DNA from: Trichosphaerium sp. ATCC 40318
Lineage: Eukaryota; Protista; Tubulinea
DNA length: 64,000 nucleotides
Assembly: GCA_038496445.1 (NCBI GenBank)
Contig: JALMLS010000213.1
Location: forward strand, 124,001 to 188,000
Direction: 5' to 3'
The translations under genes were made by a program, and so were the position numbers. Under the pieces are notes generated by a model. The model was not told the origin of the DNA, made no database searches, and saw only the letters and a program-made list of their open reading frames with translations. Shown here in pieces: positions 4,579 through 6,966 of the stretch; within the stretch, counting starts at the first letter, position 1; the number at the start of each line of letters is the position of its first letter.

Positions 4579-4815
4579 TGCCGAAATGCAAATGGAACCA
4601 AGTATATCGCTTAGAGTTTATACTGAAAAAGGGTCTTTATGCTAGTTTGTAGTCTATACTATGAGGGCATGGTGTTGAGGAAAGTTTTTGTGCACGTGAC
4701 CACTTAGTAGCCGGTATTACAAATAAATGGAACTTAAAATATACTAATTTATTAGTTTCAAGTTGAAGGTCAAAATACGACAAAAAAAAAAGAGTTTTGA
4801 TTCAATACTTGTTGG

Positions 4816-6645
4816 TCAGGATTCGTCTGTCTTGTTTTTTGGTGTCCCTGAAGATGTCATTTGTTTCTTAAGGAACCACTTTCTACCAACTTGCATTATA
4901 GGTTCCTTGACAGCTCCCCAAGTAAGGTTACTTGCTTCAAGTTCATCTTTTCCTTCTTTTTTTATATCATTCCTAAATCCAACAATTAGTTCACAATGAT
5001 TACTTTACAAATATCTAAAGCATAATGCTTAGAACTAACTTACCATAACCAATTGAGAAAACTTCTCATTGAACCACTTGACAAGTCACCTATTAAATTG
5101 AAATTAAATTCATTACCTCAACAGCAAAAAAAATTATACTAACCTTTGACACCTTCTTCTAGACCTTGTTGTAGCCTTGCTTCTGTTGCCATTATTTGAG
5201 CGTATTCTTCAGCATGTTTGGTAATAACTGGGTTCAACATCATAGCTTCTTGCTGCTTTACAGCTGCATGTGTCGTTCCTTTTGTCTTAAATACAAACTT
5301 CGAAAAGTACTCCTTTGAAATAAAGCCGTCATCATCTTCCACACAGGGATACCACACTAAACCCTCACCAGTGCCTGATACTCCAAAGGTATCCTTAACA
5401 AATGGATCATTGCTTTCAACGGCATCTACTATTTTGTTGATTTTATTGGCAGTCTCCTGAAGCTTGTCTTCATCCGCCATACAAATGTTAATTGGTTCAG
5501 TGAAAAAAGGAATGATAATGACATCAGGGTATTCATCTAAAGCATCACCCAAAAAAACTTTGATACGATCTGGGTTAATTATTAGTTTATCTCCAACCTA
5601 AAAAACAATATTAGACGCATGTAAATAATCGACGTAATCAAAAAAAAAATAAAAGAGTGTACCTGAATTGAGAAAATAGCAAAGACATTTTTATCAATGT
5701 CACAAATAGCAGCGCCTCTCATTATCCCTTTACCACACCATTCTCCAAATATCGTAAGGTTTTCCTTTGATGTATCCATGATACCCTGAACATCATGTTA
5801 AAGACTGACCGACAAAGTGAAGGCAACAGGCGGAACTCAATAAAAATAAACTTCAAAAAAAAAGTTTTAATAACCCAACCAAATTCCGAGAACAAAAACG
5901 CACCTTCCAGAACTTCAATTTACTTTTCGCGAATTTCTCGAATCCATGATTATCCTGTTTATAAGAAATAAACTTGTTTCGACTCTATAAAGATAACATG
6001 AGCACTATTAAAAATGACACAAAAACACGTCATTTTTTTATCAAAATACAGCAGAATTTAACGATTTTCACTTGTCAACGTGCCTGGAAGTACGCAAACT
6101 TCTTTGGACCTTGTACAGTTACGCTAGCGTTCGTTCCATGCACTTTAGGATAGTCAATAGACGAAGATTGGGAAGAAAGGCATTTAGCAACCGTACGTTT
6201 GATTTTGCCTCTAAATGGGATGGTGGTCTTGTCTTCAGAATGTTGAATCCTTACGTTGTGAAATAAGCGTATTTCAGGCCACCGTACAAAAGTTCCCTTG
6301 TTCCGTTTCCGAACAGTTTTTGGTTTTGCAACTACGTAATTGCGTTAATGATACAGAAAATTCGCTATCAGAACTCTTTTTACGCTGTTTGAGAGGTTTT
6401 TGGCAGACCCAATCAAGTTAAATGCGGTTTAGGTTTATTGTTGGTTACGTACGTGTAAGATCAGGGTACAGAGACTTTGCGTGTTTAATTAACCATGGTT
6501 TACATTGTTTAAACTGTTTTGCCTTTAAAGTGTCGCATAACTCCGCCTGAAGCGTGCATACATCACAATAGAGTACTTTATGAGGAAACTCTGTACTGTC
6601 ATCTTCTTTTACATCCTCATCGGGCTTATACGTCCACGGTTCCAT
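4816..6645 (-). CDS. DENR/Tma22-like N-terminal zinc domain fused to an Rnl2-family ATP-dependent RNA ligase
   Basis: Exon 1 KVLYCDVCTLQAELCDTLKAKQFKQCKPWL; ligase motifs I KIKLHGTNAS, Ia QSRN, III IFGEWCG, IIIa FAIFSI, IV GEGLVW, V FKTKG, plus C-terminal NDIKKE segment; all introns phase-compatible. Confidence 0.85.
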
Positions 6646-6966
6646 TTCAATATGTTATACTACTCTAATTCTTACTTTAGTGCAGCTAGAGTACGCCACT
6701 TCACGTAATATTCTCAAAAAGCTTTTCCCAGCAAATTACTGCGTACTGCTACAGTCAAACGACTTCCTGCATCTATAGAAAGACAAGCACGTGAACTATC
6801 ACTTGAAACGTCATTAATAAAAATAGGTTTGTACGTGCAAGCACGGGAACAACTTTTTTTTTTAACTGTCTCAATACCCACAAAAAATCTTGTCTTTTTT
6901 GAGGTTTATTTTACAAGTACATTTTATTCAAATTAACCATACATTGTCTATTTTTCTGTCCTCTCT

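Follow-up and report, generated by a model that had tools for sequence, protein, structure and literature searches.

What is the zinc module of a translation recycling factor doing at the front of an RNA ligase? The question is raised by a gene of the amoeba Trichosphaerium sp. ATCC 40318, located in a stretch of 64,000 nucleotides (assembly GCA_038496445.1, contig JALMLS010000213.1, positions 124,001 to 188,000) that was analysed as a whole and is called the window below. Three-frame translation and splice signals define one gene on the minus strand at 4816-6645, with 8 exons and 415 amino acids, in which a zinc module of the type found in the translation factor DENR (DENR_N) precedes a putative RNA ligase. 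MCTS1, the partner of DENR, is a PUA protein that contacts the acceptor end of tRNA and the 40S ribosomal subunit. The reading that is favoured here, with a probability of about one half, is that of an MCTS1-docked RNA ligase: a zinc module, a short basic linker and an ATP-dependent Rnl2-type ligase that would be recruited to tRNA or to the 40S subunit for sealing.

The gene consists of the following features, in which X1 to X4 designate public transcript runs and their contigs.

6646..6711, minus strand: 5' untranslated region, minimum extent (the X3 transcript contig extends to 6711)
6453..6645, minus strand: exon 1, with the start codon, an acidic N-terminus and the DENR_N zinc module (residues 1-64 and the first base of codon 65); present in spliced contigs
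6463..6576, minus strand: DENR_N domain proper, residues 24-61, with the zinc ligands C27, C30, C37 and C48 spaced C-x2-C-x6-C-x10-C
6332..6452, minus strand: intron 1, 121 nucleotides, GT-AG, phase 1, linking the zinc module to the ligase; joint 6331/6453 in X2, X3 and X4
6197..6331, minus strand: exon 2, with the basic linker, the WPEI..LFHNV segment and the motif I lysine K109; without methionine
6143..6196, minus strand: intron 2, 54 nucleotides, GT-AG, in-frame; joint 6142/6197 in X3 and X4
6084..6142, minus strand: exon 3, with the remainder of motif I (LHGTN)
5985..6083, minus strand: intron 3, 99 nucleotides, GC-AG, donor GCACGT; joint 5984/6084 (plus-strand ends CT..GC) in X3 and X4
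5904..5984, minus strand: exon 4, with motif Ia (SRN)
5663..5785, minus strand: exon 5, with motif III (FGEWCG) and motif IIIa (FAIFS); weak PF09414 match on the exon alone
5144..5597, minus strand: exon 6, with motif IV (GEGLVWYP), motif V (FKTKG) and the beginning of the C-terminal helical domain
5044..5089, minus strand: exon 7, C-terminal domain
4816..4972, minus strand: exon 8, with the end of the Rnl2-like C-terminal domain (ARKWF-type helix); stop codon at 4816-4818
4782..4815, minus strand: 3' untranslated region, minimum extent (the X1 and X3 contigs begin at 4782)

Two runs of one sample, X3 and X4, each gave a single contig (1348 and 1234 nucleotides, respectively) that contains the whole coding sequence and skips all seven introns exactly. 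The joint between exon 1 and exon 2 was found in the contigs of three runs from two studies (X2, X3 and X4), and the three 3' joints were seen in a contig of X1, a run from a third study. Such spliced contigs show that the joined form exists and carry no information on level or strand. The ATG lies at 6645 and is preceded, three codons upstream, by an in-frame stop; because this stop fixes the start and exon 2 contains no methionine, the ligase is not translatable without exon 1. Motif I of the ligase, KLHGTN, is formed only once the 54-nucleotide intron 6143-6196 has been spliced out. Between contigs and assembly six differences were observed, all in exon 6, five of them synonymous and one changing Ala to Gly, a pattern that fits purifying selection. 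That this is a true, expressed DENR_N-Rnl2 fusion can be taken as almost certain.

Part of the gene structure had been anticipated from the sequence alone in an earlier note on this DNA, the original prediction. Exon 1 encodes exactly the peptide quoted there, intron 1 is a phase-1 GT-AG intron that the contigs of X2, X3 and X4 skip at precisely 6332-6452, exon 2 has no in-frame start before motif I, and all the ligase motifs that had been listed (KLHGTN, SRN, FGEW, GEGLV and FKTK) are present in the spliced product. What had to be corrected is the description of the remaining ligase as a single exon: it is spread over seven exons, with six further introns including the GC-AG one.

In the spliced protein, the nucleotidyltransferase motifs I, Ia, III, IIIa, IV and V are intact, namely K109-LHGTN, SRN at 130, FGEW at 169, FAIFS at 191, GEGLV at 274 and FKTK at 300, with the longer forms FGEWCG, GEGLVWYP and FKTKG. 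PF09414 scored exon by exon gave only a weak match of 14.8 bits; the fusion orthologues presented below reach 44-55 bits for a cut-off of 27. When compared by blastp with the retrieved homologues, the full-length protein matched its closest orthologue, P0152, with an E value of 6e-118 and many PF09414 proteins with values of about 1e-80. In the same way, a 72-member family profile matched T4 Rnl2 (E 2.5e-12, residues 30-301, reaching into the C-terminal domain), and the alignment paired the family motifs with EKIHGTN, VFGEFAG, EGYVLKP and KCK of the T4 enzyme. Relatives of the ligase also gave weak PF18043 matches. The fold was assessed on an AlphaFold model of P0152, 44% identical and standing in for the window protein, with a predicted local distance difference test (pLDDT) of 91.5 and a predicted template modelling score of 0.81. 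Foldseek returned full-length T4 Rnl2 as the top match over 367 columns, followed by TbREL1 and Naegleria NgrRnl. The spliced contigs, the blastp and profile matches and the fold bear out the original view of a zinc module joined in frame to a complete Rnl2-type ligase. Judged by these matches, the enzyme is a distant but complete member of the type, with a nucleotidyltransferase domain and an Rnl2-like helical C-domain, and its catalytic activity is predicted.

Among known ligases, T4 RNA ligase 2 (Rnl2; PDB 2HVQ) is the best counterpart by profile and by fold, over both domains and with motifs I, III, IV and V aligned. It differs in sharing only about 15% identity with the amoebal enzyme, which adds the N-terminal WPEI..LFHNV segment and the zinc module and is encoded by a cellular, intron-containing gene. 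NgrRnl (Rnl5) of Naegleria gruberi and kinetoplastid REL1 are likewise eukaryotic nick-sealing ligases of the PF09414 type that bear accessory modules at the N- or the C-terminus, yet both are poorer structural matches to the P0152 model than T4 Rnl2. NgrRnl has an N-terminal OB domain of its own and is devoid of the Rnl2 C-domain; REL1 acts in the mitochondrial editosome via a partner OB protein.

The part encoded by exon 1 matched the Pfam family DENR_N (PF21023) with 33.9 bits against a cut-off of 25.3 (E 2.3e-8), the alignment covering positions 1-36 of the 37 in the profile, and its three best solved-structure matches are human DENR chains (6MS4_B, 5VYC and 5ONS_B). At this score the match is not a chance one, and the fusion orthologues score 47-59 bits against the same family. 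DENR/Tma22, the partner of MCTS1/Tma20 in 40S recycling and reinitiation, has the same succession of an extended N-terminal strand, a Cys4 zinc knuckle and a helix, and the amoebal module is predicted to dock in the same MCTS1 groove. The two proteins differ in what follows the zinc module, a SUI1 domain in DENR and an RNA ligase in the amoebal protein, and in the spacing between the third and fourth cysteines, which is 8 residues in DENR and 10 in the amoebal copy. No match to SUI1 (PF01253) was found in any exon, nor in any fusion orthologue. The positions of human DENR that matter for zinc and MCTS1 binding compare with the window copy as follows.

Human DENR C34, C37, C44 and C53, zinc ligands: C27, C30, C37 and C48 in the window copy, kept
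Human DENR Y33, hydrogen bond to MCTS1 His86: Y26 in the window copy, kept
Human DENR E42, mutation-tested MCTS1 contact: E35 in the window copy, kept
Human DENR Y43, mutation-tested MCTS1 contact: L36 in the window copy, replaced
Human DENR Y46, mutation-tested MCTS1 contact: T39 in the window copy, replaced

The original prediction was thus right about the DENR-type Cys4 module and right in part about its MCTS1 interface, in which the counterparts of E42, Y33 and the four cysteines stand and those of Y43 and Y46 do not. In human DENR, residues 24-51 are sufficient to bind MCTS1, and only the E42R/Y43A/Y46A triple mutant loses it, the Y43A/Y46A double mutant still binding (PMC6013234). Since the double mutant binds, the Y43L and Y46T changes weaken the case for MCTS1 without refuting it, and by its residues the interface of the window copy is partly degraded, not abolished. 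The remaining fusions retain PPEYCEY or PPEFCEF (E-Y/F-C-E-Y/F) at the same interface, as well as the extended N-terminal strand F/Y-P-x-x-V-x-Y-C, despite 35-44% overall identity.

Docking was modelled with the 64-residue module of the window, zinc and a heterologous, intronless MCTS1 taken from a metagenome contig (L028:1656-2252), whose Pre-PUA and PUA domains score 78.5 and 47.5 bits, respectively. The interaction prediction score from aligned errors (ipSAE) of the pair was 0.83, 0.83 and 0.84 in three runs, versus 0.00 for the best of three controls; in the calibration of this score, 51 of 78 solved complexes and 2 of 108 mismatched pairs came up to this mark. The pLDDT of the partners was at least 74 and the contacts agreed between runs by at least 83%. 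In agreement with the original prediction, the model places the module on MCTS1 where DENR is known to bind: its contacts (F20-H22, V24, Y26, T31-Q33, E35, L36, T39 and L40) are the counterparts of those published for DENR-MCTS1, and on the MCTS1 side they involve the regions His86, Lys139-His141 and Leu170-Trp175. From this model, binding of MCTS1 by the fusion protein appears reasonably probable.

An exhaustive search with exon 6 retrieved 820 homologues from a representative library, and DENR_N and PF09414 occur together in at least six other protein clusters. The architecture is therefore not peculiar to the window genome. The other fusions are listed below.

P0149 and P0152: fusions in EukProt transcriptome assemblies
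P0154/P0374: fusions of Balamuthia mandrillaris (KAL6068671.1 and KAL6080043.1)
P0007/P0151: fusions in metagenomes
P0363: fusion, full-length member of the P0153 cluster
P0347: fusion on an 84.6-kb JGI contig

Both Balamuthia proteins were deposited as 'Translation machinery-associated protein 22', and they consist of DENR_N and an RNA ligase with no SUI1. By their domains they are not DENR, and the name Tma22 is misleading. A full-text literature search found no paper on a DENR_N-ligase fusion, in line with the original prediction, nor on the bacterial ligase family with a tRNA-binding domain described below. What is new is the combination of a known ligase fold with a known docking module; the sequences themselves were already public, unnamed or misnamed.

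In a maximum-likelihood tree built on the ligase part alone, seven fusions and two N-terminally truncated fragments form one clade (support 100/99). This clade is nested in an 18-row eukaryote-type set (support 99/94), which also holds the plain ligases of Acanthamoeba, Pelomyxa and Endostelium together with a paralogue from the window genome, and in which all named members are amoebozoan. As the fusions form a single clade, the tree implies that the fusion arose once, within a ligase family in which every named eukaryote is an amoeba. The paralogue of the window genome (C266:22800-27000, locus L037, minus strand, about 1080-2400 of L037) starts directly at MKHSLWPSITKL and has no DENR_N; its motifs are complete (KIKLHGAN, QSRK, FGEWCG and FKTKG) and it groups with the plain Pelomyxa-type ligases. 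Another plain eukaryotic ligase, P0277, has an isoform of 423 residues (P0373) with about 60 extra N-terminal residues, rich in R, S and L, that resemble an organelle presequence; the plain paralogues may be dual-targeted. A further unusual fusion of the ligase family is P0104 (720 residues), a homologue with a C-terminal PHD finger.

The sister group of the eukaryote-type ligases comprises 36 rows, which are bacterial where named, and many of these carry a Trbp111/EMAP-type tRNA-binding domain (tRNA_bind, PF01588) at the same N-terminal position. Scans with single proteins gave no match to this bacterial form, which was recovered by an alignment-based scan: full-length tRNA_bind-ligase genes were found in many Cyanobacteria (Crocosphaera, Pleurocapsa, Microcoleus, Acaryochloris marina) and in Myxococcota, both domains being confirmed in the A. 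marina protein. The bacterial fusions resemble the amoebal ones in being their sister group, in sharing 36-41% identity across the ligase and in bearing an RNA-targeting module at the same place. They differ in the nature of the module, an OB fold that itself binds tRNA in place of a peptide for docking on a separate tRNA-binding protein. By its domain matches, the ligase family is thus one that repeatedly acquires an N-terminal module aimed at tRNA.

Around the bacterial genes (loci L038-L117), 6 of 48 loci had NADAR-domain neighbours and a single one a microbial PARG; the neighbours scanned in two of the loci included a gene with a Macro domain (A. marina, L076 6160-6672) and one for a metallophosphoesterase (L089). 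These neighbours hint weakly at a link to ADP-ribose handling and end healing, in a neighbourhood too poorly conserved to build on. Two tRNA_bind-ligase homologues, P0021 (794 residues) and P0068 (1152 residues), contain one or two intervening inteins that carry LAGLIDADG homing endonucleases.

In the mechanism that is proposed, the zinc module would dock in the groove that separates the two MCTS1 domains, the site bound by residues 24-51 of DENR. An MCTS1-ligase heterodimer would result, in which the ligase stands where DENR has its SUI1 domain. Through MCTS1 the ligase would reach tRNA, either free or bound to the small subunit, and seal 3'-OH/5'-phosphate breaks there; in the bacterial relatives, the built-in Trbp111/EMAP-type tRNA-binding domain, which has the same N-terminal position, would take on this task. 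That repair is the purpose of the ligase is what we infer. The DENR-MCTS1 complex was shown to bind tRNA off the ribosome (PMC6013234). For ribotoxin attack, the example of damage given in the original prediction, the analysis yielded evidence neither for nor against. The bacterial sisters move the emphasis from a ribosome-targeted ligase to a tRNA-targeted one, possibly on the 40S subunit. By analogy, their tRNA_bind domain is the best indication of substrate and suggests that tRNA is at least as likely a target as the ribosome; the assignment of tRNA or 40S-bound RNA as the substrate is a tentative one.

How the partners of such a ligase are represented in the genome was addressed by exon-wise searches. 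MCTS1 is intact on contig C14, with 8 exons (7 introns) and 184 amino acids comprising Pre-PUA and PUA domains; its best solved match is human MCT-1, and its DENR-binding surface retains K139 and W175. Intron 4 of the MCTS1 gene (L021, about 1777-1834) and intron 3 of the ligase gene (5985-6083) are both GC-AG introns with the identical donor GCACGT, most GT donors in these genes being GTACG-like (GTACGT, GTACGG, GTACGC, GTACGA), not GTAAGT. The same searches detected eIF1 (C66) and eIF2D (C277). The latter (ligatin) is a precedent, in this very genome, for MCTS1-like and DENR-like halves being rearranged by gene fusion; it differs in that an MCTS1-like part is fused to SUI1 without the zinc module (PMC6013234), whereas the amoebal protein fuses the zinc module to an enzyme.

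A separate canonical DENR, the presence of which the original prediction had proposed to confirm, was not detected in the assembly, the search having been made exon by exon so that short exons escape and absence is unproven. With PF21023, only the fusion gene scored above the cut-off in the genome, two weak matches (C286 and C39) lying inside a repeated element. PF01253 returned eIF1 (C66), eIF2D (C277) and three near-identical eIF1-like fragments but no DENR, and TIGR01159 returned eIF2D alone. The SUI1 exon of eIF2D used as a genome query gave weak repeated matches only, which are not SUI1-like. With a profile of the N-termini of the fusions, a single weak match of 11 residues was obtained on C461, where the DNA is not similar to that of exon 1. 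This match (C461:9984-10058, L024 about 1501-1575) reads KHFKTCHPWLM, resembles the second half of the zinc module and has possible flanking splice signals. It has no CxxC upstream and no SUI1 downstream and, besides the weak C286 and C39 matches, is the sole further DENR_N-like trace in the genome; it is probably due to chance. The three SUI1 fragments (RYHKRNTRKGWTIVEGLETTKLKVNLKK) share conserved flanks (C456:14255-14359, C38:261717-261821 and C382:16282-16386; L014-L016) and look like a repeated eIF1-derived gene or pseudogene family. Within the 64-kb window, no functional link to the ligase gene was seen among the adjoining open reading frames.

Several observations weigh against a ligase docked on MCTS1. 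Two of the three side chains changed in the binding-abolishing triple mutant of DENR are substituted in the window copy. The MCTS1 of the complex model comes from another organism and a similar complex has already been solved, so that the score may reflect likeness rather than binding. In the monomer model of P0152, the zinc module and the linker have a pLDDT of 89-97, from which it follows that the module may pack on the ligase body. Finally, MCTS1 alone bound tRNA poorly in vitro and needed DENR (PMC6013234), and a ligase that replaces the SUI1 domain may not restore tRNA binding.

The main rival to the MCTS1-docked ligase builds on the first and third of these points. The zinc module would have been co-opted and would no longer recruit MCTS1; instead it would cap the ligase structurally, regulate it or form a small nucleic-acid-binding knuckle of it, and the enzyme would be a general cytoplasmic nick-sealing RNA ligase like its plain paralogues. 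The two substitutions fall in the mutation-tested interface, the high pLDDT suggests a fixed intramolecular position, and the plain paralogues of the window genome and of other amoebae indicate that the ligase works without a targeting module. However, the PPEYCEY/PPEFCEF segment and the N-terminal strand have been kept in the other fusions at 35-44% identity, which is hard to explain without a partner that reads them. Moreover, the complex model places the module of the window at the canonical site even so, the controls scoring 0.00, and the MCTS1 of the same genome retains its DENR-binding residues. Loss of MCTS1 recruitment is on balance unlikely, with roughly one chance in four left to it.

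A second rival accepts the binding predicted by the complex model and gives it another purpose, namely regulation instead of targeting. The fusion would compete with DENR or replace it, modulating reinitiation and 40S recycling, or MCTS1 would merely stabilise the ligase. DENR and MCTS1 are mutually dependent for stability (PMC6013234), which would agree with such a role, as would the failure to detect a canonical DENR by searches in which eIF1, eIF2D and MCTS1 turned up. Against it, the ligase motifs are all intact and the coding changes mostly synonymous, which speaks for a catalytic part under selection and not a mere carrier, and the absence of DENR, looked for exon by exon so that short exons escape, is unproven. 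A purely regulatory role seems even less plausible than co-option.

The idea that the protein is simply the DENR/Tma22 orthologue of the organism, as the name given to the Balamuthia proteins and the lack of a separate DENR might suggest, or a chimera of two neighbouring genes in assembly or gene model, is rejected, because there is no SUI1 anywhere in the protein and its DENR-like part is only 38 residues long, exon 1 and exon 2 are joined in spliced contigs of two studies with no start codon in exon 2, and the same architecture exists in independent transcriptome assemblies of other species (P0149 and P0152).

To our knowledge, recycling and reinitiation are the only functions described for MCTS1-DENR, and we know of no role for the Rnl2-like family despite its many bacterial members. 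For the latter, both N-terminal modules, the bacterial tRNA_bind domain and the amoebal MCTS1 docking peptide, offer a clue to the substrate by pointing to tRNA. The fusion also exposes the annotation error in the Balamuthia 'Tma22' deposits. If the MCTS1-docked reading is true, MCTS1 would act as an adaptor linking the tRNA/40S recycling machinery with RNA repair, and the fusion would be the first case of an RNA ligase in physical association with the machinery of translation recycling, as well as the eukaryotic counterpart of the bacterial ligases that have their own tRNA-binding domain. It is conceivable, though somewhat doubtful, that MCTS1 has in this amoeba group a second, DENR-independent client, a ligase that would form a heterodimer with it and repair or process tRNA, whether free or bound in the P site of 40S subunits after termination, and that may even be the main partner of MCTS1 in the window species, in which the exon-wise searches detected no canonical DENR.

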